DNA of 63,732 bases, filler included, from Octopus bimaculoides (GCF_001194135.2; 8 parts of 5 records of this genome joined end to end with filler, not necessarily neighbours in it), one strand, 5' to 3'; positions 948 through 25,352 are shown, numbered from the whole stretch's first letter. The notes: generated by a model from the letters alone, not told the origin. Numbers and translations are program-made.

Positions 948-1025
948 CTAGTGTCTCCAGTTCAGAATTCTCTGTCTCCTCAGCCTCAGGTTCTAACTCG
1001 TCTGGTATCGTATCCTCTTCGAATT
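948..1025 (-). CDS. Secreted acidic protein, coding exon 6 (78 bp, (E)FEEDTIPDELEPEAEETENSELETL); gene continues beyond window start
   Basis: tttcctccatttcaattttctag|AATTCGAA...GACACTAG|gtatgaatt; phase 1-1; paralogue of exon 5; no stop codon reached within the window. Confidence 0.87.
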
Positions 1026-1631
1026 CTAGAAAATTGAAATGGAGGAAAGTTATTATTCGAAGTTTTAATACTAAATATTTAAAGATCTTTTTCTTTTTGT
1101 TATTTGAATATTTGCCTTCATACTGGTAAGAAGGGATTCACATCCCTCTGATACATCCAATAATGCAGTATCACCTGATGAAATGAATCAATGATGATGA
1201 TGAACCAGATGCCCGCTCAAAATCATGTAATTTGTGGAANNNNNNNNNNNNNNNNNNNNNNNNNNNNNNNNNNNNNNNNNNNNNNNNNNNNNNNNNNNNN
1301 NNNNNNNNNNNNNNNNNNNNNNNNNNNNNNNNNNNNNNNNNNNNNNNNNNNNNNNNNNNNNNNNNNNNNNNNNNNNNNNNNNNNNNNNNNNNNNNNNNNN
1401 NNNNNNNNNNNNNNNNNNNNNNNNNNNNNNNNNNNNNNNNNNNNNNNNNNNNNNNNNNNNNNNNNNNNNNNNNNNNNNNNNNNNNNNNNNNNNNNNNNNN
1501 NNNNNNNNNNNNNNNNNNNNNNNNNNNNNNNNNNNNNNNNNNNNNNNNNNNNNNNNNNNNNNNNNNNNNNNNNNNNNNNNNNNNNNNNNNNNNNNNNNNN
1601 NNNNNNNNNNNNNNNNNNNNNNNNNNNNNNN

Positions 1632-1680
<49 letters not shown>

Positions 1681-1684
1681 CACA

Positions 1685-2365
1685 TAGGGTGCGGTGAATA
1701 AATTGACATCCAAATTATGCAAAAATGAAAATAACACTAACAACTCATTTTAACAGATATATTTACCAAAATTGCATAAAAATATCTTGAAATGCTAAAG
1801 AGTAAATTTATTCAATAAAATCGCCATTGGCTTCAACTACTGCCTCCAGATGACTTCGGAATTTCCTGCATCTCTTCTGGACGGTCCATAATACTGCCAT
1901 AATCCTTGCCTTCAGTTCATCTTTGGTGTTGCAAGGAGTTTTGTTGGTCTCTCACTCAACTGCACCCCACACATAATTATCAAGGGACTTGCAGTCTGGG
2001 GAGTTAGGTGGCCAGATGTTAGGGGTGATGTGGTCGCATAAATTGTCTGACAGCCATGACTAGGTTCTCCTGCTTGTGTGGCATGGTGCAGAGTTTTGTT
2101 GCCAGACATAGAGTCTTCTAGCAGCCACCATCTTGACCCAGGGCAGCACTACCTTCCCCAAGCACTTGATGTAGCTCTCTGTGTTGAGTGTGAGACCATG
2201 TGGGAAGATGAATGGAGTCATGACGTCATCACTAGTGATCATTCCAAACGCCATGATATGATTGGATGTTTGATTGTTATCACTCTCGGTACATGTTTTG
2301 GGGACACAAAAAGCCAACGGTAGTTCTGTGTGTTCACCATCTGATCCTGGATAGATCTGCATAAA
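1685..2365 (-). mobile_element. Tc1/mariner maT-type (DD37D) transposon, 3' half, pseudogenised
   Basis: Minus strand QDQMVNTQNYRW...VMTPFIFPHGLTLNTESYIKCL...WQQNSAPCHTSRRT*SWLSDNLCDHITPNIWPPNSPDCKSLDNYVWG...VEANGDFIE*; 37 residues between catalytic positions 2 (D to N here) and 3; in-frame stops. Confidence 0.88.
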
Positions 2366-2645
2366 ATTAAGACTAGCAAACGACAACCGCCACCCAGAGT
2401 GTCAGATTACTAAAGGAAGATGACAAGGCTACTAAGACGATAGCAACACTTGGAGACCCGCATTCTATTTCTCACTACCTAAAGAAATCCAAATAACAGT
2501 ACTTGGTCAATGAAACATTTGTCAACGGATGACATGCGGCTTCGTGCCGTACGAAGTCGGCCACCGCAGCTTTTCAAATAGCCCGGTTCACTATTTCCTG
2601 TTGGAGGTTGGTCTGGAACGCAAACAAAGAAGCAAAGAATATATT

Positions 2646-2705
<60 letters not shown>

Positions 2706-2740
2706 CGTGTGTATGTAAACATATACATTTATAAATACAC

Positions 2741-2770
<30 letters not shown>

Positions 2771-2771
<1 letters not shown>

Positions 2772-3933
2772 TCAGGTTGGTGCAAAGGTAATGGCCGATG
2801 TTTTAGAAAACAGTTTTAGACAGTATTTTTTTAAATTGTAGCTCTTGCAATGTTTTAAGAATATAACTCAGTAATTTATACATTTTCCTTTCAGATTCTA
2901 ATTGTATTGGTCATAATCTTCTGCTATATTCACACCCATGTTCCTCCTATCTAAAGACCACATTAGACATGTCTTCCTCTATGAGTTTCATAAAGGTTTC
3001 AATGCAAGCACAACAGCAAAGTCTTTTCAGAGAGTTTATGGGGATGATGTAGTGAGTGAAAGAAGCTGCAGGAGATAGGTTCCGCTTCAGAAGTAGGGAC
3101 TTGAGTTTGAAAGACGAGCCAAAAGAAGTCGTTCAAAACAACTTGATTCTGAATAGTTGGAAGCTGTTGTCACAGAAAATCCAACCGCTACTTGTAGAGA
3201 ACTTGCAGAACAGTTTAACGTAGCTCGTACAACTGTTCTATCTCAACTGAAAAGGATCGCAAAGGTTTTAGTGGTTGAAAATGGGTCTCCAGAGAATCTG
3301 CAACAGCGTGTTGTTTGTTGTCAGTCATTGCTTTCACGACATCTTAAGAAACCATTTTTCGGGAGGCTTGTTACAGGTGATGAGAAGTGGATTCTTTACC
3401 ATTACATTAAACGTCAGCGATTGTGGATCAGTCGAAGAGAAAGACCTGCTCAACAACCAAGAAGAGGACTTCATTCAAGGAAGATCACGTTGAGTGTATG
3501 GTGGGATATTGAAGGAATTGTTCATTACGAACTGTTAGGCAACAATCAAAGAATTGCTGTTAATCTCTACCATGATCAACTTCATCGTTTGAAAGCTTTG
3601 ATCAGAAAGCAACCTTGTTTAATCAACAGAAAGGGTGTCATCTTCCACCATGATAGTCCTTGTTTGGGATGTTGCTTCATCCTTCATATTCTCCAGACCT
3701 TGCTCCTTCTGATTATCACTTGTTTTGGGGACTACATAACCATTTGAATGGTCTTAGGTTGACATCAAGGGAAGAGGTTGGAAATAAGTTGGATTCATAT
3801 TTCGCATCAAAACCTAAGCAATTTTACAAGTGTGGCATTTATAAGCTTGTTGACAGATGGAATGAAGTTCTAGAAATCAATGATCTTTTAATAGAGACCT
3901 TAAAATCGGCTACTACCTTTGCACCAACCTGAT
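2771..3933 (+). mobile_element. Near full-length mariner (DD34D) element with both TIRs; transposase disrupted
   Basis: TIRs atcaggttggtgcaaaggtaatggccgatgtttta (2771-) and taaaatcggctactacctttgcaccaacctgat (3901-3933); ORF from ATG 2938 MFLLSKDHIRHVFLYEFHKG..., TGDEKW, HHDS, YSPDLAPSDYHLF; stops and frameshifts. Confidence 0.95.
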
Positions 3934-3987
3934 TGATATATATATATACATAAATACATACATACATAAATGCATACGTATGTATGT

Positions 3988-4044
<57 letters not shown>

Positions 4045-4100
4045 NNNNNNNNNNTGTGTGTGTGTGTGTGCGTGTGTGTGTGTGTGTGTGTAGTTCATAC

Positions 4101-4178
4101 CTGGTGTCTCCAGCTTTAAATTCTCTGTCTCCTCACCCTCAGTCTCAAACTCATCTGATATCATATTCTCCTCGAACT
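4101..4178 (-). CDS. Secreted acidic protein, coding exon 5 (78 bp, (E)FEENMISDEFETEGEETENLKLETP)
   Basis: ttctccctttttatttctctag|AGTTCGAG...GACACCAG|gtatgaac; phase 1-1; about 63/78 nt identical to exon 6 by hand alignment. Confidence 0.87.
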
Positions 4179-4794
4179 CTAGAGAAATAAAAAGGGAGAA
4201 ACCATTTGTATAAAATGTTAATATTAAATATTTTAAGTGTTTTATACTTTTAGAATATTTGTGAGGCAATGCAAAAATCATTCACAATAACACAACGCAT
4301 ATCTCTTCCTTAACGGGTAAATACAAGAATATTTATGAACAAGTACTTCAAAATCTACAGCTTCTTTAGCTTGATAAAATCGCCACACATTTAAAAATAA
4401 TTATTACAGCACTTGGTTTTCTTATTGAACCCTTCTTTGGCAGCTTTGAGCGTCTATGATTTTTCTGCAAGCAAGGTGTTCACATAAAATATGCCTACAT
4501 AAAATACATCTATTTTCAACTGATATCTGTAAGATACCAGTTAAAAGTAGATACGAAAAATAATAAAGACTCTACTGAGAGATAAATTCATACATTTTCG
4601 TTGATGTATTCAAATTCAAGCATTGTATTTTTACCTTTTAACATTTAAACTACCACTTCTTCTCAACTATAAAAACACATATTTAAAGACAGAAAAAACA
4701 CATGCATGCATTCAATCAACCATTACAGGCATTTATGTATAAATACTTACCTGCGTACGTACATGCATGCTTTCACACATGTAATTTATGTATG

Positions 4795-4847
<53 letters not shown>

Positions 4848-4989
4848 GTACACATGCATGCATGTATGTATGTATGTATGTATATGTATGTGAATGCACG
4901 TAAGTATATATAAACATATATATATATACACACAAACACACTGTGATAAGGTGCTATGTCCGGATTGTCGGCAGCCAGTGGTTTGAAGT

Positions 4990-5410
4990 TCACCAGGAGA
5001 ACATACCTCTGGTGACTGCAATAAGACAATTCGTATTACCTGTTAATAAATACTGCAGATTGATAGAGAATGTGAAGTTTTTCACGAAGATAGAGCTGGC
5101 AATTACGGGCGCTGCGTGAATAAGGTGGTTTCCTGTCAATGATGGTCCATTTGATGCTGAGCGTCTTATCCTAGAAGTCACGGATCCTCCAGAGGAATCA
5201 AGACAAAGAAGTCGAATTCTCTCAATCCCTGCATCTGATCGAGTGCATGTGCTGTGTGTATCAGCCAAATCATTGGCTGTCATGTCCATGTAGTGCCTTG
5301 TAATGACATTGGATGGTGTGAGAGTGCCTCTGTAGACTTACAGCCCTCGAGAGGCAAGATCCTCCTAGAGGGAAGCCGGTAGGGTTTAGGCAGTTGCAGG
5401 TTGGGGTTGG
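4990..5410 (-). mobile_element. Penelope-like element, GIY-YIG endonuclease remnant
   Basis: Across frameshifts: CNCLNPTGFPLGGSCLSRAV-VYRGTLTPSN...RHYMDMT...IKWTIIDRKPPYSRSARNCQLYLREKLHIL...YCSHQRY, matching the PLE CNC-CPLxGxC / VY / YIG / C-x-H layout. Confidence 0.75.
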
Positions 5411-6884
5411 GGGTTGTAAGAGTGTATGTTTGTGTCCGTAGTAGCGTGACCCTCCTTGACTAATGGCAGCCTATCTTTCGGTAGCCATCTTGGACTTCTT
5501 GGATCCCCCCATTCAGCGTCCCAGAAGCCTGAAAGAGTCGGGTTCCGTTAGGAGCCAGCGAAAGTTGAAGTAGCACAGAACCGAACCAAACTGAAATATA
5601 GGAGAATTGATTTGGAAGACGAAAATGCAGTTGTGTCATAAAATGAAATGTTGCATTAAAAAATACGATTCTGGGTAGTTTTAATAGTCATTCTGTCATC
5701 AGAACATCCGATTTGACAATACTACGCAGTTAACTCTTACTCCATCCTCCCTTCCTTCTCCTCTCTATTTTTCCTCTCTGTCTTCCTCTCATCTATTTAT
5801 CCTGAGTTATCTGTACATCCCTGTTTAAAGAAATAGATTAGTTTGTAGCAATGTCCGATCATTGTTTTATAGCCCGTTGACCTCTAAAATCTTCGTTGGT
5901 TAAAGATTGCTAGCACTCGGTGTGTTTTCACTCTCTTCAATGATGCATAACTGAGAAGGTCAATCCACATCTTGTGGTATTTTTTTCTCTGAGCCAAATT
6001 TTTAGTCACCTGAGGAAAATAGTCTTTCGATTACATAATCGAACTATTCATCAATAAAAATGCGTTTGGAATAGCATCTTTAAATTTTACATTATTTATT
6101 GATTTACTCGTATCCCCGATCCTTTATTTTTAAGTTAGCTTTGTATCTTTTTATCTTATTGGTACCTTTTCCTTCAATATATGTATTTTTTATATACTGT
6201 TGCTACATTAATCTATAAATATTGTTCTTAATTATTAATCCTAAAATTTTAAATCCTCCTTACTGTTGGGCATCTATTTCTAGCATTTTAGCTCTCATTA
6301 ATGGTTGGTAAACCACAGCAGCAAAGCTCTTCCTAACCACCCAAGACCGATATTTATCTATTTAGCTTTGGTCTCCCTACGTCCATTTGATTACTCTTAC
6401 CCCCCACCCTCCTCGATAGCCTACCTTCATAATATGTCAATTGCTTTATTTCTCTTTGACTTTGTCATTCCCTATGACCTTTCACCCTGACACTACCGTG
6501 TGTGTGTGTGTGTGTGTGTGTTTGTGTGTGCGCGCGTGTGTGTATGCGCATGTGTGCGTGTATGTATGTACTTCGAAATTCGCAGGTTCTTTATCTTGAT
6601 TAAAAATACACATTACAAATAATTACTACTACATTTTGATATGTGAATGCTTCAGTAACAATTTTGAAAAGTCACCATTTTTCTCAAAGATATTATCTTG
6701 TTGCATAAATCTTACGAATACAATGTTTCTACGTAGGTTCTTATGTATGTAGTATGTACACATTCATATATATACATATAGACACACACACATGGTGCGG
6801 TTCTTTGTATGAGTATACGAATGTGTGTCTCACTGTGTCTCTATATGTATGCACATGTTTTGTGTGTGCATGTATAACACATAC

Positions 6885-6962
6885 CTGACATTTCCATTCC
6901 TGTATCTCGAATCGACTCGGTCTCAAGCGTCATCGTCTCAGGTATAATACTCTCGTCCGTTT
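6885..6962 (-). CDS. Secreted acidic protein, coding exon 4 (78 bp, (E)TDESIIPETMTLETESIRDTGMEMS)
   Basis: cttccatttatttatgtag|AAACGGAC...AATGTCAG|gtatgt; phase 1-1; same length as, and gapless alignment to, exons 5 and 6. Confidence 0.82.
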
Positions 6963-7044
6963 CTACATAAATAAATGGAAGAGACATATTATTACAAATG
7001 CTATAATACCTAATGTTTAATGTATTTTTCTTATTTCTTTTTTC

Positions 7045-7245
7045 TTTTACTTGTTTTAATAATTTGACTGTGGCCATGCTGGAGCACCGCCTTTAGTCGA
7101 ACAAATCGACCCAGGATTTATTCTTTGTAAGCCTAGTACTTATTCTCTCGGTTTCTTTTGCCGGACCGCTATGTTAGGGCACGTAAACACGCCAACATCG
7201 GTTGTCAAGCAATGGTGGGAGGGGGGACAAACACAGACACACAAA
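7045..7245 (-). mobile_element. tRNA-derived SINE family B, 3' part
   Basis: Matches 63430-63732 copy (gactgtggccatgctggagcaccgcctttagtcga...aagcctagtacttattct); runs into an N gap. Confidence 0.85.
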
Positions 7246-8613
7246 TGCATATATATATNNNNNNNNNNNNNNNNNNNNNNNNNNNNNNNNNNNNNNNNNN
7301 NNNNNNNNNNNNNNNNNNNNNNNNNNNNNNNNNNNNNNNNNNNNNNNNNNNNNNNNACACACACACACACACACACACATATATACTAATAAAAGTGAAG
7401 TCCAATTTTGCTTGCTTGTAATGTTACACAGCCAAACTGGCACATAATGGGAAAATACTATGAATTAAGTTTCCCCTAAAATGTTAATACGAACAGAATA
7501 CAATAAGTTTCGCGTAAATCGGACCAGTAGTTATTGTGATATTCGGGGTTTGGGGGTATAAATACCCAAAACGGTGCATAATGGGAAAATATTCCGAATA
7601 TAACTTCATCCTGAAAGAGAAGAAATTCTAACCTTTCGATTAGACACAGTGATTTGACAACGAAAAAATACGATTTGTTTTTTACAGTAAATGATTCTAT
7701 TTTCGCTTTTATTAAACACAATACTTTAATCATTTAGAGATATTTTTAAGTGAATGTGATTTCAAAAATGTAAGTTGTTTGTACAGTAAGTATTTATATT
7801 TTAGCTTTCTTTAAACAGACGATATTTTAATGCTTTTTGAAATTATTCTCAAGTGAATACCATTACAAAACTTTGTCTTAAAACGAAAATGACTTTAAAA
7901 ATGCGGTAAATATTTCATAAAAGATCCGTTCGTAACCTCGGTGTGAAATAATTTTTTTCGATAGGTTTTTTACGAATGCATTCAACATATCTCATCTCCA
8001 AAGATTTGGCTGCTATTTCTAGCACACGCTGCTACCACGTAACAGCTATTTGCGATAAAGGACCCGAAATACCTGTTACGTAGTAGCAGGGCGTGCAGGA
8101 AATAGCAGCCAAATATTTCCTTTTCTGGGTAAGGAGCCGTTTACGCGTGATTTCGATGTCACATTCGTTGAAATAACCAACGGTCACGGGTAGTCTAGTA
8201 TATGACTCACTACTGACCCTTCCATCTACGCACACATCCAAACACACACACACGGCCACACCCACTCATTCACACTCCTGTTACTATAGCTGCTGGCCTT
8301 TCAGAGAGACATTAACACACGCACAAACGCGCGCGCGCACACACACACACACAGATCCTACCACACACACACGCTATCATACTCATACACACAGTTACCA
8401 CCACATGCACACACGCTACCACGCACACAGACATACACACACATGCAGTTACTGTTGCACACACACGCGCTAGCATACATACACACATATACATACCGAC
8501 CATCTTCACACTCTCCTGTCCCAGAAAGCACTTTTTCTCCGCCTTCTACTTCCAGTCACTTCTCCTCTTTCTACTTCCGGTCCTTCTTTCCCTTTGGACT
8601 TTCCTGTTTATTC

Positions 8614-8650
8614 TGTTTCCGACGAAGAGCTATACTCGAAACGTAAAACA
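8614..8650 (+). ncRNA. Degenerate minimal hammerhead ribozyme motif (PLE terminus)
   Basis: TGTTT-CCGACGA-A-GAG(CTATA)CTC-GAAAC-GTA-AAACA; helix I TGTTT/AAACA; core U4 changed to C. Confidence 0.6.
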
Positions 8651-9068
8651 ACAACTCTCTTCTTTCTCCGAGCGTCTTATTAATACATTACTTGTGCTAC
8701 GACCGCACGTTTGTTTCTTCTTCTTCTTCTTCTTCTTTGTTTTTTGAATTGGCTATATATGTGTATGTGTGTGTATGTATGTATATATACACATGTATAT
8801 ATATGTATGTATGTATATATGTATGTATATATGCTTGTATGCATGTATATATGTATATATACACATGCATATATATGTACGTATGTATATATGTATGTAT
8901 GCATGTGTGTATGTATGTATGTATGTATGTATGTATGTATGTATGTATGTACATAGGTAATCTCTTGGTTGCTGGAGATATGTATGTTTATACACGTGTA
9001 CGCTTAAATATATCTACAGATGTGTACTAAAGATTGCTAGATACAGAGATATATACGATAATGTTGTC

Positions 9069-9341
9069 AGTTTCAACAGAATTGATAAGGAGCATTCTGC
9101 CTCACTGGCGGACCTAATATAAAAACTAAAAGACAATGGAATAAAATATAGTATTATTTGGTCCATAACAAATAATGCATACCCGTATGAACCCTTTTCT
9201 AGAAATTGCTATTTATGTTCAGAGAAATCCTTATGCATTTTGTTGAATGAAGAGAACTTAATCAACGAATACTCCGAAAGATTAATAAGATGTAACCATA
9301 GACCTAAGTACACATTTTCACTATATAACATGAACAATTAA
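9069..9341 (+). mobile_element. Penelope-like element, endonuclease C-terminus
   Basis: SFNRIDKEHSASLADLI*KLKDNGIKYSIIWSITNNAYPYEPFSRNCYLCSEKSL...NLINEYSERLIRCNHRPKY; typical PLE W-x-I, C-x-LC-EK and C-x-H tail. Confidence 0.8.
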
Positions 9342-10279
9342 TTAATTAATTAATGTGACTATCAATAGCTAGCAAGATTAATTTTTGCTGAAATGTTAAG
9401 GTCAATTTAAATTTCCGATTGTTTGTTTTGTTCTATTCTGATCGCATGTATATTTTATGGTTTTATTTAATGGTGTTTTGTCATCGGTGTATCACATTTT
9501 ACTTGTTTCTTTTATTTTATTTCTGATGCCTTGTACTCTTCTTTTTCTATTGCTTATATGAAAAGAATTCTTCATCGTATCTTATCTATGGAGACGCATA
9601 GTTCTCTACAATTAACAAAACGTATTGTTATAGAAATAAACGAAAGGGCAAATCAAAACGAGGTACTTTATGAGAAGTTACCTGAAGAGGCACCTCTGCG
9701 CCTACGCTGCACCACGACTCTTTGTACAACATCTCCATCTGCAAAGTACCGGAGCATGATGGGTCGAAACGATCGTAGTGAATGAATAAAATATAGAAGA
9801 TAGTGAATTCTATTTCCTTTTTATCCTCACTTAAATGTAGATATTCTGTTAGAACAAACTATACTGCGGTAGTTACCACGAGAAAAACTCTCATATTGGC
9901 TTTTGGTGCAAAATGCACTCTTGTTAATATCGCTGGCGGGAAGGTAAATCCCCCCCTTACACACACACCTCCAGCAGAGACTACCAGATCATGTGATTTT
10001 GACCTTCTTTGGACTTGTCAATGATGGAGGCTTGGCCGCTAGAAATAGCAGTGAATCATCTCCTCACCAGCGATATATAAAATAAGAGCTAGAACAGGCA
10101 CTGGTGTTGCGATTAGCCAGTGAGCTTGATAAAGAACGTCCGCGTGTAAGTTGGGATGAATATTACCTCTCAATATTAATACTGCCTCTGTCGTTAATAT
10201 ATATCTATTTTCTTTCTCTAATATTTTTATATGTTCATGTGTGTGTGTGTGTGCGTGCGTGTGTGTGTGTAATTCATAC

Positions 10280-10345
10280 CTTCCATCTCCTGTTTCATAT
10301 CCCGCATCAGCTCGGCTTCAGGCATCTCCTCATTTGACTCATATT
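10280..10345 (-). CDS. Secreted acidic protein, coding exon 3 (66 bp, (Q)YESNEEMPEAELMRDMKQEME)
   Basis: ccattttatttctgcag|AATATGAG...GATGGAAG|gtatgaatt; phase 1-1, open, Glu-rich; flanks resemble those of exons 4-6. Confidence 0.82.
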
Positions 10346-10949
10346 CTGCAGAAATAAAATGGATGAAACACATTATTTAAAACTTTAATATTTAATATTT
10401 CATGTTTTCATGTTATTGTTTCTAAATTACTGTGACTAAGCAGAAAGACTATGTACACTCAGATGTTCTGCGGATGTGAACATCTCTTCAATAACCACTG
10501 TGTAGGAAAATATATAAGGTCAGCTACTTAGAAACCTGCAACTTTTTGTTGATTAAAAATGTTAGCAATAAAAATTATTGAAGCGCATAGGGCGATGAGC
10601 TGGCAGAATCGTTAGCACACTTAGCGTCATTTCGTCCTTGCGTTTGTGTTTTCGTTTTGCTAAGGTGAGTAGTGGTGGTGGCGACGGCGGTGGTACTATG
10701 GATTTGTCGGTTTTGTGTGTGTGTGGTTTCGGTGATACTATTGTGATTGAGTGATTCGTTCAGAGCTGTTGTAACTTTTTAAAATTTTATATTATCTTTT
10801 TCTTTTCTTTTATTTGCTTAGCTAGTCCTCCACCTTCCAAGATATTTTCACGTCGGAAAGATTCTATGCAGGAGAAGGTAAATTTGCATGTGTGTCCATG
10901 TATGTATACTTAAAAAGAGGAGCTAGAGAGAGAGCCATAGGGAGGGAAT

Positions 10950-11468: not shown

Positions 11469-11544
<76 letters not shown>

Positions 11545-11545
<1 letters not shown>

Positions 11546-12076
11546 GGATGCAGTACCAGGCAGTGGCTCTCATGGCTTCTGATCTTAACTGATTGGAAGT
11601 GTTATCATGTACATTGTTTTGTCTTGGTATAAAAAGATGGGCTACAGCAAATATTCTGCTTAATACCACAGATTTNNNNNNNNNNNNNNNNNNNNNNNNN
11701 NNNNNNNNNNNNNNNNNNNNNNNNNNNNNNNNNNNNNNNNNNNNNNNNNNNNNNNNNNNNNNNNNNNNNNNNGTTCTTTGGGGTTTGAATAATTCACCTT
11801 TGGAAACATGGGTGTTTTGCTCAACATCCTTAAACAAACCTTATTCAGGGACCTTTTGAGCGGGATGGGCTACTCGACCTGAAGAAAATTCTAACTGGGC
11901 CCCATCTGCAAGGTCATGCGCTGTTTATCTTGATATGAGATCACCATGTCGCGTACATATGGTTGTGATGCATGTGCCTGGTGTACCCTTATCAGACGGG
12001 TAGTCATGATGAGTATAATGGGCTTCGTATATTTTACCCCAGTGTCACTTTGATGGCATGCACTGCTCTCTCACTC
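11545..12076 (+). mobile_element. About 510-bp non-coding element flanked by (AAT)n, copy 1 (contains an N gap)
   Basis: gatgcagtaccaggcagtggctctcatggc...ctgctctctcactc(aat)n; collinear with 13360-13864; no tRNA A/B boxes seen. Confidence 0.85.
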
Positions 12077-12097
12077 AATAATAATAATAATAATAAT

Positions 12098-12281
12098 AGT
12101 AACTGCAGAATATGTGGTGATGAAGAAGAAACAATAAATCATATTGGCTCTGGTTACCCAGTCCTGACTAAGAGGGAATATATTCACAGACACGACAGGG
12201 TGCAGGTAGCAAGCCCACTAAGCATGTAAGGCTTCAGGAGCTCCAACAAAACTTGTGATAAAGAGAAATAATAATAATAAT

Positions 12282-13359: not shown

Positions 13360-13864
13360 TTTCCCTGATGCAGTACCAGGCAATGGCTCTCATGGCTTTT
13401 GATCTTAACTGATTGGAAGTGTTATCATCTACATTGCTTTGTCTTGGTATAAAAGGTGGGCTACAGCAAATATTCTACTCAATACCACAGATTTGCTTGT
13501 CACTTGTTTGACCTTAACTAGTTAAGCATGTCCCTTGGTGGCTGACTATATGTGCAACTCTGATCACGAGCAAGCCATGTGTTGAGAGGAATTCTTTTGG
13601 GGTTTGAGTAATTCACCTCTGGAAACATGGGTGTTTTGTTTATCATCCTTAAAACAAACCTTATTCTGAAACCTTTTGAGTGGGATGGGCTACTCAACCT
13701 GAAGAAAATTCTAAGTGAGCCCCACCTGCACCATGTCGCATACATATGGTTGTGATGTATGTGCCTGGTGTACCCTTATCAGACGGGTAGTAATGCTGGG
13801 TATATTGAGCTTTGTATATTTGTACCCCAGTATCACTTTGATGCCATGCGCTGCTCTCTCACTC
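13360..13864 (+). mobile_element. About 505-bp non-coding element flanked by (AAG)n/(AAT)n, copy 2
   Basis: cctgatgcagtaccaggcaatggctctc...gctgctctctcactcaatagtaataat; same family as 11545-12076. Confidence 0.85.
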
Positions 13865-13865
13865 A

Positions 13866-13931
<66 letters not shown>

Positions 13932-14131
13932 TGTAATAATAATAATAATAAGAAGAAGAAGAAGAAGAAGAAGAAAATGTAATAATAATAATAATAGATA
14001 GATAGATAGATAGATAGATAGAAGAGTTCTTTACTTTTACAAAAGTAAAGAACTCTTCTATCTATCTATTATATTTCTGCTGAGTTACTTCAGTCCTTTA
14101 TATGAACTACTACTACTACTACTACTACTAC

Positions 14132-14209: not shown

Positions 14210-14250
<41 letters not shown>

Positions 14251-14635
14251 TATAATAATAATTATAATAATAATAATAATAATAATAATAAGTGTGGAGG
14301 TTTACATATAAAGAGTGATGAAAAAAGAAGAAAGAACTATACACAGCATACATTAAAAGAAATGTAGTATACATAATATAAGCAATAAGNNNNNNNNNNT
14401 AATAATAATAATTATAATAATAATTATAATAATAATAATAATAATAACAAAGTGTGGAGGTTTACATATAAAGAGTGATGAAAAAAGAAGAAAGAAGTAT
14501 ACACAGCATACATTAAAAGAAATGTAGTATACATAATATAAGCAATAAGGAAAAACAATTGTGATATGGTGGGAGGGGCCTCCTGACACAGGAGGACCAC
14601 TGGGGATGACCGAAAAACCTCACCATCCAAGATCG

Positions 14636-15447
14636 CCCTACTCTCACTCCTGTATGTGCTGGGTCTCGAGCTATTGCTACGAGACTGAATATTTCAAGGA
14701 GCATCCCGCATGAACTAGGATGTGGAAGGTTCGAGTCGGTTTATGCGGACGACGTCACCATAATAGTGTCGGACGTCTCCGAAATCGAGGTGATCAGCAC
14801 TGCTCTAAGAGAGTACGGAGCGGTGACAGTGAACAAAGATTAACTAGGAGAAGTCGATATATCTGCAACTCGGAACCTAGAGAAGCAAGTCCATGTCGAC
14901 CGATAGCATCGGATGGAGCTTGACAGAAGGACCGGTTAAATTGCTTGGGGACTGGTTTTGTCCGGACTTCCAGGTGGACCAGAACAAGGAGAGATGACAA
15001 GCAGGATGGTCAGTTTCACCCAGAAATGAGCAAAGACGAAGTTGTCCCTAAAGAATCAGGCGGAAATAGCAAATACGTACATCGCTTCTGTCATCTACTA
15101 CCGCCAACCGTCGTCCCTTACTTTGCTTTGTGGTTGATCAAGCTGGAGTGTTCGCTCTCCTGCTTTCTGTGAAAGAGGCATGTTCTACTCGTCAGAGAGT
15201 CCATCTGTTGTCAGCAGCCGCTGAGTGGTGGACTGAGTATTCTGTGACTAATGATGTACAGGCATGCACTGAGGTTGCGACATCTCCAGCGTTTCCTTAA
15301 TGATAGAGGCGACCATCGCTACCTGGAAGCCGTCTGTAAAATGGCCAGTTTCGGACCCGTTTTCAGGGGCTGCATCGTTGCAATGCACAACGGCACCTGC
15401 TCGGTGGTCAAAGTAAATGATCATCTATTGGAACCGTTTAGAGTCGC
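14636..15447 (+). mobile_element. L1/Tx1-clade LINE reverse transcriptase remnant
   Basis: LLSLLYVLGLELLLR, SVYADDVTIIVSD (YADD at 14742-14753), GPVKLLG, YIASVIYY, RHALRLRHL, then DHRYLEAV..FGPVF..VKVNDHLLEPFRV; many stops and frameshifts. Confidence 0.85.
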
Positions 15448-15738
15448 NNNNNNNNNNCATGAATTTATTATTTTTGTTTTTACATAGATATTTTACCTGT
15501 GAATTTGCGTGTGTAAACTAGGAATTCATACAATGAGCTTCTCTGCCCTATGTGTACAGAAAACACTCGGCGAGAAATGGAAGAAAATTTAAAGAAAGAA
15601 AGAAAAAAAACAACATAATAATAAATAAATAAATAAATAAACGACTCTTTCTATTCCATCTTATTTTATTATACGGTCGGTTAGCGATCACTAAACGATG
15701 CACTCATGTTTAAGTAATCTGGAAACAGTTATACTTAC

Positions 15739-18507: not shown

Positions 18508-18538
18508 CAAAAGCCACAAGTAAAGCACTCGTCTTCAT
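18508..18538 (-). CDS. Secreted acidic protein, first coding exon (MKTSALLVAF + phase-1 G); exon spans 18508-18541
   Basis: Minus strand: ttcttttctgcacgccgcag|AAAATGAAGACGAGTGCTTTACTTGTGGCTTTTG|gtaagtga; strong acceptor and donor; AAAATG start; encodes n/h-region of a signal peptide and joins in frame to 15739-15771. Confidence 0.8.
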
Positions 18539-19192: not shown

Positions 19193-19939
19193 TTGCGGGT
19201 ATTACGACTTCTCATAGAGATGTCTCCATATGTCTGTGTGAGCACGAAAGATCTCCTCAGTAAAATCAGTACTTGCAACCACTCCAACGACCTCACAGGT
19301 TGTGTAGTGGGTAGTATGGATGTGATTTCACTCTACCCATCTATAGACATAGATTTTGCTGTGGAGATAATCATTCAGGTGATCTGTGAGAGTGAAGTGG
19401 AGTTCCGCAAGGTCAACACGAGGGAACTGGGCCTCCTCCTCAGGCTAAGCTACGACAGTAACTATTTGGATGACCATGACCTCAGTAGATTCTGCCCCAC
19501 CAGGTTACAGAGGGGAAGACCATCCACCATCAATTCAGCAGTGAAAAAAAGCACCACTGAATGCTGGAGTGACTGGACTGCACCCACCCAAAACCCTGAG
19601 AACAACAATCAGGTGAAGGAAATGATTGCTCACGCAATAGGGGCCAGTATAAAAACCACCTTGAAGAACCACATAGTAAAGTTCAACAAAAAATTATACA
19701 TGCAGGTTCAAGGTGCAGCCATCGGCGTTGGTGTAGCTGGAGATGTGGCCGGCCTCTTCATGACCTGGTGGGACAGAAAACTTAAACATATGTTAGCAGA
19801 ACAGTCCACAATTCTTCTACTTTACAGCAGATATGTAGATGACATTAATATCATAGTTAGGACCAACTCTAGTGACGGTCGTGTAGAAACAGAAAGGAAC
19901 GTAATGGAGAGCATCCAGCAAATAGCTAACTCCATCCAC
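19193..19939 (+). mobile_element. Penelope-like element reverse transcriptase core (open frame, ends at a gap)
   Basis: VVGSMDVISLYPSID, LYMQVQGAAIGVGVAG, LLYSRYVDDINII (YVDD 19832-19843): PLE-type RT motifs. Confidence 0.88.
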
Positions 19940-20996: not shown

Positions 20997-21073
<77 letters not shown>

Positions 21074-21200
21074 CTGTTTGTCTGTCTGTCTGTCTGTCTA
21101 TCTGTCTGTCTATCTGTCTGACTCTATTTATCTGTCTGTCTGTCTATCTGTCTGTCTCTATTTATCTATGTCCGTCTGTCTGTCTGTCTGTCTGTCTGTC
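20840..21200. repeat. Compound (CT)n/(TCTG)n/(TCTA)n low-complexity tract
   Basis: Directly visible. Confidence 0.95.
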
Positions 21201-21614
21201 CAGTGTAAATAAGTTATACATAAGTAATTTAACAGTTTCTACCACTGTCATGTACCTGGAAACCATATTTTAAGTCAATGGAAGGCGATAACCCATTGGC
21301 ATGCGCTAACAGCAAGTGTTCTTACTAGTTTTTTTTTTCCAGAAGTGGAATGGAATACGTCCAATTCTCTTTAATTAGTTTTCGAACCCAATATTTTAGC
21401 GCTATTATTTATCTTTTTATGCTTCGCGCTGCAATGTTCCAAAAATTATATTTATGTGTTTGATATTGTCTATATACAATTTAAACATGTTTAAAAATTT
21501 TGTATGATTTATTATATTTTTCACATCATCCCGAGATTAATTCTTTTCCGAAATATTTAACATCAACTGCTTGTACGTGTTTAGCAACATTTATCATGTA
21601 ATATATAATTCTTC

Positions 21615-21700
21615 AAGACGGCGATCAGACAGAATCGTTAGCACGCCGGGCGAAGTGCTTAGCGGTATTTCGTCTGCCGTTACGTTCTGAGTTTAAATTG
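21615..21700 (+). mobile_element. SINE family A, head
   Basis: gacggcgatcagacagaatcgttagcacgccgggcgaagtgcttagcggtatttcgtctgccgttacgttctgagtttaaatt. Confidence 0.8.
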
Positions 21701-23224
21701 GTAGCGAAATTACGCCTTTACCATACATATCCGTGTGTATGTATTGTTTCATCTTCGTTGGATTGGTTGGTTCAATCGAAGTAAAGATATTTTAAGTGTA
21801 GTACTCAATGCATGATAAGTTTGTAAATTTTAACATATTTTGATTTCAAGATATATCGTCTCAACTCAGAAAGTTATTTGCAATCTAGAACTCTCTTGTA
21901 GAGTATATCAAATTGTTACGGTAGGTTTGCGCCATTAAGAGATCTCTTAACTAACTGAGATGCCTTTGTATCGTTAGCAGAACTAGAAAGGAACAGAATT
22001 CGTATGACTGTGAGTATGCCCGATAAACCCATTAGAAACATCAACGATCCAAACAGTTTTCCGTAATATTCTACTGAATATCTGTTTCTTTTTAGGAAAA
22101 AAAAACACCGTTGGCTGCATCTGACTGCCATGTGCTTCTTAAAAAGTGATGCAACCACTCTTCTAATTGGGCTACTCTGCCGTGATCACGAAGTTTGCAA
22201 CATGCCATCCTTTAGTCGTCTATTTTACGGATCGATTCTAGGAAAGAACAACTGGTGTGCAAATTACTCTTCCAAAACTAAAGATTTTGAATGATTATAT
22301 TTTGCAAAGTTACTTCAAAATATTAGTTTGGTTTAAAACATTTAGTACGATATTTATCAATTTGAGTATTTAAGAATTTCCCCACAAAATATGAATCCTT
22401 TTTCGATTTATTGTCTATTTGGCCATGAATTCAAGATCTTGGGTATATAGCAAGAAGAGAGGGATTTCAGAAATCTAGGCAAATATCGATTATGATATTG
22501 ATGTATTCATCGGAGAGTATAATTATAGAAAAACATGAATTCAGATAATAGCATTACATTTATTGAGCAGTTACGGTCCATAGTTAGTGTACATCTTACA
22601 TGAATTACATATTAGATTAAACATGTAAAAAGATATTTATGTAAAGTATATTAAATGCATTGCGTTTACACCAAGTCCAGTGAGATCATTGATGGAAACT
22701 TTCAACGAATATATATACGTTTTTTGTAAATAGATTTTTTATGTGGCTATAACCTTAGATATTAATTGATGGATCACGTTCAATAATTATCGAAACGAAC
22801 GCAAATGGCGAATAAATGTTCTGCCAGCTTCTGCATTCCTTTCACTATTTCTTTCCTTCTCGCTATATAGAGTTCATTGTTCGGTTAAGGTAAGATAAGC
22901 AACAAAAGTACTCCATCCAGTGAGACAAATATCGTTCAATATATACAGTATAAAGGTACGTGCTACGAAGAGTTTGCTGCCGTAAAAATACGTACCTAGG
23001 CAGGATTTTATGGCACGCCTTGTGTCTCCAAGAATATTCAATTTCTGAGAACATGATCTCTTCTGTTTGAAAATCAGGACGCTGGTACATAAGAAAACAC
23101 GAGAAAAAATGAGAAGATTGTTGATGTAAAACATGGAAGAGTGAAACGGGAAAAGAAAAGATTATAGTTACTTCTCTTTTGACTGTGGAGAGAACTGCTC
23201 AATTCGGGGAAGGTGGTGTCCTCC

Positions 23225-23603
23225 AGTTTGCCACAAGAAAATTTATCCGTATGCTTGCATTTGCTGAAAATTTCAGTTCTGGAATTAAGTAGTACTGTGG
23301 AATTTTTAGATCTAAAAAAACATTGCGTTCTTTCAGCTACGCATAAGTTGAATTTCCTAGATGTGGCATGAACTTTTCTATTCTCCACTTGATTGTAAAT
23401 GGCATGCAGTTGACCTTCAAACCACATCCGTGGCTAGCCAAATTAGTGACTTTACTTTTGCCAATGTGCCGTAAAGGAGATAGATGGATTGCATAACGTC
23501 TTTTGAAATAGCCTTCGCATAAACCGATGTAATTTTTCTTATCATTTAAGTTTTCTTGAAGCGTGGTAGTGACTTCTGCCTTATAGACGACGGAGTTTAT
23601 CAT
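23225..23603 (-). mobile_element. Penelope-like element GIY-YIG endonuclease remnant
   Basis: NSVVYKAEV...KKNYIGLCEGYFKRRY..H...FTIKWRIEK, then FNLCVAER...LLNSRTEIFSKCKHTDKF across frameshifts. Confidence 0.85.
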
Positions 23604-23684
23604 ACATGCCTGGTCAAGTGGGCAAGCTTCAGGGTCCCGAGAGTTACAAGTGGGAGTGGGCTCTTGGTGATGCTTACGTGGGAA

Positions 23685-24000
23685 CCATCAATGCCAACCT
23701 GTACTCCGGACAGCTGGAGCGGATGTATGCCATTGTCAACAAGTTGGTGAACAGAAAGTGAGCTTCTCTGTAGCAAGACACTGCAAGACCTCAAAGCGCG
23801 CGAACGACCCGGCATAGACTCTACGGACTTAAGAAAATCGAACGGGTGTATGACCCAGAATATTGGCCGGACCTAGTTCTCTTGAATTGTTTCTTGATCC
23901 GATTCATTGCTCATTTCCTGTTCTCGCGACGCTTCATCAACCAAGAAGAGGTGGAAGCTTCAGTGAAAGGAGTTCTTTGCCTCGAAAAACAAGAACTAGC
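23685..24000 (+). mobile_element. mariner transposase C-terminal remnant
   Basis: TINANLYSGQLERMYA..LVNRK*ASL*QDTARPQ..PEYWPDL..AHFL..RRFINQEEVEASVK, a decayed QDNARPH / YSPDLAPSD region. Confidence 0.75.
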
Positions 24001-24716
24001 ATCTGAGTGGCCCCTCCTTTCAATGCTAGGGCGCTTTGGTTGTAGCTTAGTGAATAAAGCAAATAAGTCAGCAATACATATGTGTGTGTGTGAGAGAGAG
24101 AGTGTGTGTGTGTGCGTTTATGCATGAATGTATGCATCTATGTGTGATTTGTGAAGCAGTATAACCCGGATTATGACATATAACCGATGAATTTTAGCAT
24201 CAATTTTGTGCGGAACATTGCATTTGGCTTTAAATATGCTGGTCGGAAGAGTATTGTATCTTTTTCGCTTGAGGCAAATATATAACATTTTTCTAGAGGA
24301 GAAAAAAAGTTACCTCCCATGGATTACTGTCAGTTGTGATCGAACACAGACATGGTTACATGTCTGAGTTTACATGATTTCCGTTCTCTAGCCTGGAAGG
24401 AAGACGACAATCTTATGAAAATAAATTTTCTATTGTGGAGAACAACGACAAATTTCGCTTTCTGAGTTCAGGAAGGCGTCCTGATCATATGAAATATATT
24501 GGAATGATTCTCTCCTGTCGATCATGTAAAGCTTTCAGTGTTGAATCCCGTACTTTCGTTCCGATACGATCCAAGTTGTAACATTAAGCATCTCATGGAT
24601 TCTAAAAGCGGTCCTACTTGTCCTTTACGAAAACAGAAGGCAATCGGGACAGTATTTCTAACAATTGAATAAAGACAGGAAGACAGAGAACGCAATAAAT
24701 AATTTTATATTTCAGA

Positions 24717-24783
<67 letters not shown>

Positions 24784-25352
24784 TGAACACTTTTATAATA
24801 TCATTTTGTTATTGTTTAATCTTGTATGACATGAAAGAGACGTTACAAAAAATAATTAAAAAAAAAGAAATAGACAAAGTAGAAAAAGCAGCAGCAGCAG
24901 TAGTTACAGAACAGGAAAAGTAGTACAAGATAAATAAAAAAAAAAAGAAGTGGGGCGAGGAAAAAGGTTATGTCTATTTTGGAATGTCATATTCTTTGCA
25001 TGAAAGATGGAAATTTTATTTCACAGATGTATAACGACCTGCAGACATGATTCACATGGGAATGATCATAGACATTTTTCTACTTGTTTGTCTTTGTCTG
25101 AAAGGAGAAAGCATGCTAAATATCAAGTTTTGTCTTCTATACATCACAACCAAATGTACATTTTGTTTCCATAAGCAAAATAACGACCCTGCCACTTATA
25201 TTAACTCTAAACTATAAACCTAACTTAAAACCAGGGGTGACATATTTATATATACATACATATATATATATACATGTATATGTATATATATATATGTGAT
25301 GATATATATATATATGTGATGATATATATATATACATATATATATATATATT

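Follow-up and report, generated by a model that had tools for sequence, protein, structure and literature searches.

In the PEVK region of titin, modules of about 28 residues and Glu-rich motifs each lie on a short symmetric exon, and these exons were expanded by duplication and are differentially spliced to set the length of the spring. More generally, genes for disordered proteins are often built of symmetric exons through internal tandem duplication (PMC3632108, which mentions titin PPAK), and surveys cited in PMC9013439 put the share of animal genes carrying tandemly duplicated exons at about 10%. Does an octopus gene have a comparable history? We analyzed a stretch of 63,732 nucleotides (nt) of Octopus bimaculoides DNA (GCF_001194135.2), hereafter the window, in which 8 parts of 5 records are joined end to end with filler. 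The piece that bears the exons described here is animal DNA, rich in A and T and in repeats, and several assembly gaps interrupt it. Its minus strand holds four short exons for acidic peptides, here called cassettes and numbered exons 3 to 6 after two predicted upstream exons. We consider it probable that a gene restricted to octopuses has its 5′ part on the minus strand of the window, and that in this gene an array of cassettes arose by serial tandem duplication behind a signal-peptide exon pair.

The cassettes can be read directly from the sequence as four open segments of the minus strand (66, 78, 78, and 78 nt), each bounded by AG and GT. With their peptides and flanks, they are as follows.

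10280-10345, minus strand: exon 3, 66 nt, phase 1-1; acceptor ccattttatttctgcag, donor GTATGAATT followed by (CA)n; peptide EYESNEEMPEAELMRDMKQEME
10346-10425, minus strand: conserved acceptor flank of exon 3, with the AAATATTAAATATTAA element, a branch-site-like TATTAA, a pyrimidine tract, and AG
10238-10279, minus strand: donor region of exon 3, GTATGAATT and then a (CA)n microsatellite
6885-6962, minus strand: exon 4, 78 nt, phase 1-1; acceptor ccatttatttatgtag, donor GTATGTGTT; peptide ETDESIIPETMTLETESIRDTGMEMS
6963-7042, minus strand: conserved acceptor flank of exon 4, from the flank comparison
4101-4178, minus strand: exon 5, 78 nt, phase 1-1; acceptor ccctttttatttctctag, donor GTATGAACT followed by (CA)n; peptide EFEENMISDEFETEGEETENLKLETP
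4179-4261, minus strand: conserved acceptor flank of exon 5, with an exact AAATATTTAATATTAA at 4218-4233
3990-4100, minus strand: donor region of exon 5, GTATGAACT and then a long (CA)n run enclosing the 10-N gap at 4045-4054
948-1025, minus strand: exon 6, 78 nt, phase 1-1; acceptor ccatttcaattttctag, donor GTATGAATT at 939-947; peptide EFEEDTIPDELEPEAEETENSELETL
1026-1106, minus strand: conserved acceptor flank of exon 6, from the flank comparison

All four lengths are divisible by three, the phase-1 reading is free of stops in every one, and the first residue of each cassette is Glu, by way of a G carried over from the preceding exon. A first-pass annotation, made from the sequence alone, had described most of this architecture, and its particulars proved accurate on remeasurement. 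Every cassette is indeed phase 1-1 and a multiple of 3 (4/4); the roughly 15 differences it had counted between exons 5 and 6 are exact (63/78 nt identical); exon 4 aligns to exons 5 and 6 without gaps (39/78 and 41/78 identical); the donors are alike, with GTATGAATT in exons 3 and 6, GTATGAACT in exon 5, and (CA)n runs continuing from exons 3 and 5; and all four acceptors follow a common pattern, cc[a/c]ttt..tt..ag. The introns, given there as 2.7-3.3 kilobases (kb), measure 3317 nt (exons 3 to 4), 2706 nt (exons 4 to 5), and 3075 nt (exons 5 to 6), estimated gap lengths included.

Three assembly gaps lie among the cassettes. One (4045-4054, 10 N) sits inside a (TG)n run, 47 nt past the exon 5 donor, with the same repeat on either side; another (7259-7356) lies 297 nt upstream of the exon 4 acceptor, between CA/TA-type repeats; and the third (1240-1631, 392 nt) lies 215 nt upstream of the exon 6 acceptor. 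All three are intronic, so that no exon or reading frame depends on them. The largest could hide one more unit of about 170 nt, and the number of copies in the window is therefore a minimum. Strand, order, and phase are common to all the cassettes, so that any of them can be included without breaking the frame; the scaffold order across the gaps is assumed, and is plausible because all cassettes lie on one strand and because a gapless locus in Octopus vulgaris, described below, has the same layout.

Are the four exons related by descent? Exons 5 and 6 resemble each other far beyond chance (z 7.7-21, the value of 21 coming from local alignment). Because local alignment at +1/-1 is too harsh for exons that are about 50% identical, the more distant pairs were instead judged by their in-register identity relative to composition-preserving codon shuffles; a free-end-gap pairwise identity matrix was discarded for its spurious 100% values from short overlaps. 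Against a shuffle mean of about 25 identical positions, the matches of exon 4 to exons 5 and 6 yield P <= 0.00085 and P <= 0.00015, respectively, and exon 3, aligned with one 12-nt gap, is identical to the other cassettes at 36-38 of 66 nt (P 0.0016-0.014). The shuffling check proposed in the first-pass annotation for exons 3/4 and 5/6 thus places their similarity, in register, beyond chance. The strongest evidence of homology is the noncoding sequence upstream: the 90-nt intron flanks before the exons are alike in all six pairs (z 3.6-11), and 0-7 of 1000 dinucleotide shuffles reach the observed scores.

How large was the duplicated unit? A self-comparison by BLAST aligns the exon 5 and exon 6 units over 172 nt at 77.9% identity (4094-4261 vs. 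941-1106) and detects no further alignment between the introns beyond this unit. Duplication of exon plus flank, as earlier proposed, therefore stands, but the recognizable unit is short (about 170 nt for exons 5 and 6), and the remainder of the 2.7- to 3.3-kb introns has no detectable similarity. In leave-one-out profile searches every omitted unit was regained (expectation value, E, 1e-16 to 1e-30). A profile built from O. vulgaris units only finds exactly four units in the window, at E 1.7e-37, 3.6e-29, 4.2e-18 (exon 3), and 5.5e-10 (exon 4), with the next match at E 0.17; no fifth cassette was found by profile searches of the readable window. A weak cassette-like match at 9047-9115 on the minus strand, in the intron between exons 3 and 4, covers an acceptor region and exon start (E 0.17-1 in three profile searches); it is nonsignificant and may be either a decayed relic or chance. 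Neighboring exons are thus similar beyond chance, their homology reaches into the flanking intron, and the splice signals lie within the duplicated segment, all as in tandem exon duplication. These results support a common origin of the four exons as diverged copies of one exon-plus-flank unit. The exon and flank statistics, the profiles, and the independent O. vulgaris locus together uphold the earlier inference that the acidic region grew by repeated duplication of such units.

Do related cassettes occur in other genomes? In a full HMMER scan of the spliced product (133 amino acids) against 1.84 billion representative proteins, there was one match (E 1.6e-7), an O. vulgaris "hypothetical predicted protein" (CAI9715271.1 / A0AA36AH76). 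It derives from an EVM/PASA gene model in that species, and the O. bimaculoides assembly is fragmented (PMC10700109). The gene covers 79 kb of chromosome OX597814.1; we extracted the surrounding locus, hereafter L001, which comprises 99,478 nt and contains no N. A unit profile derived from the window gives 18 matches in L001, resolving to at least 10 distinct cassettes (54, 75, or 78 nt), all of them multiples of 3 and phase 1-1, with flanks designed as in the window. A GT donor is kept in 9 of 10 distinct cassettes, mostly GTATGAATTACA-like and often followed by CA/TA repeats; most acceptor flanks read ...tttcctcc.tt..tttctctag before an exon-initial AAT, and most donors closely resemble AG followed by GTATGAATTACA. 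Nucleotide identity between window and O. vulgaris is 75-92%, and the best cross-species match of exon 6 lies at L001 43880-43989 (85.6% identity). CAI9715271.1 and the window share a 26-residue module (EFEENAIPEELESETEEAEDLELETL in O. vulgaris, compared with the peptide of exon 6), the exon design, and the flanks; they differ in the set and order of their cassettes, and the O. vulgaris model is cut at its 5′ end. Because a profile of O. vulgaris units alone finds the four window units, these exons belong to a larger cassette family of two octopus species.

Some O. vulgaris copies are dead. One at about 52.6 kb of L001 has lost both splice sites (AG to GG, GT to GA) and 30 nt of its sequence, and another (81214-81291) has a donor changed from GT to TT; L001 carries further partial copies as well. 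The live exon 5 of the window, with about 615 nt upstream, is collinear with the dead cassette at L001 52017-52645 (66.6% identity over 683 nt). L001 also contains large duplicates: a direct one of 20.8 kb (1-20791 vs. 53900-74726, 99.7% identity) and an inverted one of 4 kb (21017-25000 vs. 86169-82176, 99.35% identity). The annotated gene extends across both, and they may represent either very recent segmental duplication or a haplotype-duplication artifact, inflating the annotated cassette count. L001 also contains a sequence resembling a signal peptide, MKYTALLYSLG, but, lacking a donor site, it was dismissed as a chance match.

What might precede the cassettes in the window? Two upstream exons are predicted.

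18508-18538, minus strand: predicted exon 1, ATG at 18538, encoding MKTSALLVAF plus the first base of a split codon; donor GTAAGT; ends in phase 1
15497-15565, minus strand: predicted exon 2, 69 nt, phase 1-1; long pyrimidine tract and AG acceptor; donor GTAAAA

Both exons end in phase 1, and together they would encode a signal-peptide-like N terminus, MKTSALLVAFVFSVHIG/QRSS..., and then YTRKFT. An AG with a pyrimidine tract just upstream of exon 1 suggests a further exon of the 5′ untranslated region. Exon 2 contains an internal GTATGAATT like the cassette donors, and a 10-N gap (15449-15458) sits 38 nt beyond its own donor. After signal-peptide cleavage the predicted product would begin QRSSLYEFLVYT-RK-FT, with a dibasic site 12 residues in; the arrangement, which depends on predicted exon 2, resembles a propeptide or neuropeptide precursor.

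The cassette part of the product comprises 100 amino acids, with 35 Glu and 6 Asp vs. 4 Lys/Arg, a net charge of -37, and an isoelectric point of 4.05. A single-sequence AlphaFold model is of low confidence (mean predicted local distance difference test score 58, predicted template modeling score 0.23) and renders exons 4 to 6 mostly as coil with one short helix. No Pfam match was found at E <= 0.01 for the window product or at E <= 0.1 for CAI9715271.1, and no sequence in the PDB matched at E <= 1. Judged from composition and model, the most likely product is a polyanion that is intrinsically disordered and secreted, its secretion and expression being presumed; any calcium-binding role would be pure conjecture.

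How could such an array have grown? We propose that a signal-peptide exon pair came to be followed by an array of symmetric phase 1-1 cassettes, each specifying an 18- to 26-residue Glu-rich module. The duplicated unit would have comprised an upstream flank (a branch-site-like element and pyrimidine tract), an exon of about 78 nt, and a GTATGAATTACA donor with its CA/TA microsatellite, and the duplicated DNA would have been short, from a few hundred base pairs down to about 250 base pairs per period. Unequal exchange between the microsatellites behind the donors would be a plausible mechanism. Each copy would then have kept its splice signals, phase, and acidic character while its peptide sequence diverged, and transposons and microsatellites would later have inflated the introns to about 3 kb. 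Several observations bear on this scheme. Two L001 cassettes, AFEDY and EFEEN, lie just 176 nt apart, for a repeat period of 254 nt. In the window, the one intron examined for filling elements, that of about 3 kb separating exons 5 and 6, is taken up by a mariner transposon, remnants of other transposons, and microsatellites.

2771-3933, plus strand: mariner element, complete but decayed, its reading frame broken; located between exons 5 and 6 within the intron, outside the duplicated unit

This mariner makes up part of the length of its intron; its terminal inverted repeats, intact and 32 nt long, are 91% complementary, and it matches the Pfam family Transposase_1 at E 1.9e-16. Given the 176-nt intron in O. 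vulgaris, and the mariner and microsatellites between exons 5 and 6, the 2.7- to 3.3-kb introns of the window are probably secondary. Before the acceptors of exons 3, 5, and 6, at a distance of 41-57 nt, there is a conserved upstream element, AAATATTTAATATTAA, which is AT-rich and partly palindromic; it has nine matches in the window compared with 1.7 expected. The stretch 120-313 nt upstream of exon 5 has matches, too, in the sequence that precedes several O. vulgaris cassettes, which suggests that some duplications carried more of the intron. That the flanks stay recognizable while distant exons drift to about 50% identity is most simply explained by continuing selection for splicing.

Is the array coding at all? 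The cassettes could instead be a locally amplified noncoding repeat that mimics exons, the O. vulgaris protein being an artifact of ab initio prediction. The locus is rich in repeats, L001 has its near-identical segmental duplicates, the product has neither a Pfam nor a PDB match, and its single relative among 1.84 billion representatives is a flawed model. A noncoding repeat would not readily explain, however, why the lengths of 14 units (window and O. vulgaris) differ by multiples of 3 only, or why AG and GT occupy identical alignment columns in 13 of the 14, in one orientation only. One frame is open throughout: the chance of an open phase-1 frame in all four window exons is about 0.001 by shuffled exons and about 0.05 by simulated neutral drift from a common ancestor. 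Among five cassettes of EF type (exons 5 and 6 of the window; EFADN, AFEDY, and EFEEN of O. vulgaris), nonsynonymous differences per site (pN, 0.14-0.19) are below synonymous ones (pS, 0.27-0.68) in all eight comparisons, with ratios of the corresponding rates (dN/dS) of 0.08-0.66. Expression and splicing of the exons draw indirect support from this substitution pattern and from the O. vulgaris EVM/PASA gene model. Copies in L001 that lost splice signals, one of which has a large internal deletion, are otherwise decayed or skipped by the gene model, unlike intact copies, and the predicted signal-peptide exon pair upstream ends in the matching phase. We therefore regard a noncoding origin as improbable, although not negligibly so. 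A number of points nevertheless count against the coding, serially duplicated gene that we favor. The antisense frame is open in all four exons too, as expected for GAR-rich sequence; dN/dS was estimated from 13-20 substitutions per pair, and the pairs are nonindependent. Exon 2 is a prediction from window sequence alone, with no counterpart found in L001. More broadly, window exons 1 to 4 have no clear counterpart in the 99 kb of L001, so that L001 is possibly paralogous or rearranged and orthology is not secure. The model of CAI9715271.1 begins within a cassette, at an internal Met, and enters one of its cassettes through an odd acceptor lying upstream; its last exon is read in a different frame, and the model extends across the 20.8-kb segment that is present twice at 99.7% identity. 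Finally, the protein collections searched included no other annotated protein resembling CAI9715271.1 or the window product and no annotated protein with these exons from O. bimaculoides. Word-indexed protein searches returned no match for the spliced 133-residue product and the query alone for CAI9715271.1; with a three-cassette profile, none of 8000 candidates reached E <= 1, and CAI9715271.1 was itself missed, the acidic words having probably swamped the list. A literature search on the accessions of CAI9715271.1 yielded nothing, nor did supplementary data from a study of the O. vulgaris skin-mucus proteome, and a search on tandem exon duplication in cephalopods returned no papers.

Could the resemblance of the exons reflect convergence on an acidic low-complexity composition, with no common descent? 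They are 41% Asp/Glu, and local alignments of exons 3/6, 4/6, and 4/5 are no better than shuffles, those of exon 3 with exons 4 and 5 being modestly better (z 0-4.3). Yet in-register identity exceeds codon shuffles of the same composition, the upstream flanks are homologous in every pair although they encode nothing, and profiles from the other species regain all four units, flanks included; convergence is accordingly very hard to sustain. A different arrangement would be a cluster of mutually exclusive exons, as in Dscam or 14-3-3zeta: the upstream intron element, serving as selector, would pair with a docking site, and only one cassette would enter each mRNA. The exons are homologous and equal in length and phase, as such a cluster would have it; a partly palindromic AAATATTTAATATTAA is conserved upstream of exons 3, 5, and 6; and tandem duplication is able to create selector sequences (PMC6071210). 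However, no separate complementary docking site was found in the piece: plus-strand matches are palindromic self-overlaps, and two matches with three mismatches are at chance level. Cassette lengths across the family are unequal (54/66/75/78 nt), and the region is repetitive and probably disordered, so that its modules would be added to one another and not exchanged. In the O. vulgaris model many cassettes are joined serially, and a 176-nt intron gives no steric block. Because of the missing docking site, the unequal lengths, and the serial joining in O. vulgaris, a Dscam-like arrangement is quite unlikely. Serial tandem duplication of cassettes within a coding gene remains the reading we prefer.

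Might the array be tuned by splicing or copy number? The first-pass annotation had held that any subset of cassettes could be skipped in frame, which is true arithmetically, and the length and charge of the product would scale with the number of cassettes included. Regulated skipping is, in this sense, an arithmetic possibility. Purine-rich sequences act as splicing enhancers, and one would expect efficient inclusion of GAR-rich exons with strong signals; constitutive inclusion fits the purine-rich GAR exons of the array, and their strong, conserved splice signals, equally well. The companion claim of tuning by copy number fares unevenly. In its favor are the dead O. vulgaris cassettes, one collinear with the live exon 5; against it, orthology is insecure and the window ends 947 nt past exon 6. 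Cassette decay in O. vulgaris, as read from the genome, lends limited support to copy-number change. A more ambitious picture is conceivable, if doubtful, on these data: an octopus-restricted orphan gene or small family, with an entire mature product made up of at least 10 independently spliced acidic cassettes of 18-26 residues, rapidly gained, lost, and killed between species, whose combinatorial inclusion would yield graded secreted polyanions, with the AT-rich element at -41 to -57 serving as a shared splicing-control site.

The window also contains other repeats and mobile elements. At 1-210 on the plus strand lies a C-terminal fragment of a second mariner-type transposase (PDLAPSDYHLF...KYIDD*), cut by the window edge and resembling the element end at 3660-3932. 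Two SINE-like (short interspersed element-like) copies of about 520 nt, at 11497-12102 and 13363-13890, are 89-94% identical and lie amid very long (AAT)n, (AAG)n, or (AAC)n runs; a further copy occurs at L001 40767-41303 (90-92% identity). A 10-N gap at 14391-14400 separates two copies of a 152-nt segment (14238-14389 and 14400-14549) that are 97% identical, which looks like an assembly duplication. On the plus strand, a long open frame at 19193-19939 carries the YVDD motif characteristic of reverse transcriptases and continues past the end of the piece, with no Pfam match at E <= 0.01, and a second decayed, reverse-transcriptase-like stretch lies at about 14600-15450. Intronic palindromic inverted repeats occur at 8000-8118 and 14000-14078 (79% and 92% identity).

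What would the array add to current knowledge? If expressed, it would represent an unannotated, lineage-restricted secreted octopus protein, nearly all of it built by exon duplication. It would offer a clean example from nature of a disordered repeat protein growing one symmetric exon at a time, and it would show how transposon insertion later masks the original period of duplication. The contrast between live and dead cassettes in two octopus species would, moreover, allow rates of exon birth and death to be measured.

How does the locus compare with described systems? With tandem exon duplications in other animals (PMC9013439, PMC3632108) it shares homologous neighboring exons, a common length class and phase, homologous splice flanks, and a repetitive, probably disordered region. 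It differs in being an uncharacterized, apparently octopus-restricted orphan whose known coding part is nearly all cassettes. Moreover, the best-known tandem exon duplications are mostly mutually exclusive pairs within folded domains, which the octopus array apparently is not. The likeness to titin PEVK is one of architecture only: one short symmetric exon per Glu-rich module of about 26 residues, a multicopy array (four in the window, at least 10 in O. vulgaris), and in-frame skipping of any subset, by which length and charge would scale with the exons included. No sequence homology to PEVK/PPAK modules was found in the Pfam, PDB, and 1.84-billion-protein searches; in addition, the octopus product is predicted to be secreted whereas titin PEVK is sarcomeric, and differential splicing of the octopus array is hypothetical. 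The SCPP/SIBLING genes (PMC3632108) likewise specify secreted, acidic, disordered products through a signal-peptide exon and short symmetric exons with internal duplications, but their exons are of class 0,0 rather than 1,1, they are vertebrate genes, and they have no sequence similarity to the octopus array. Tandem duplication of symmetric exons is well documented, and the octopus gene, a clear but ordinary case of it, adds an example to these systems rather than a new principle.

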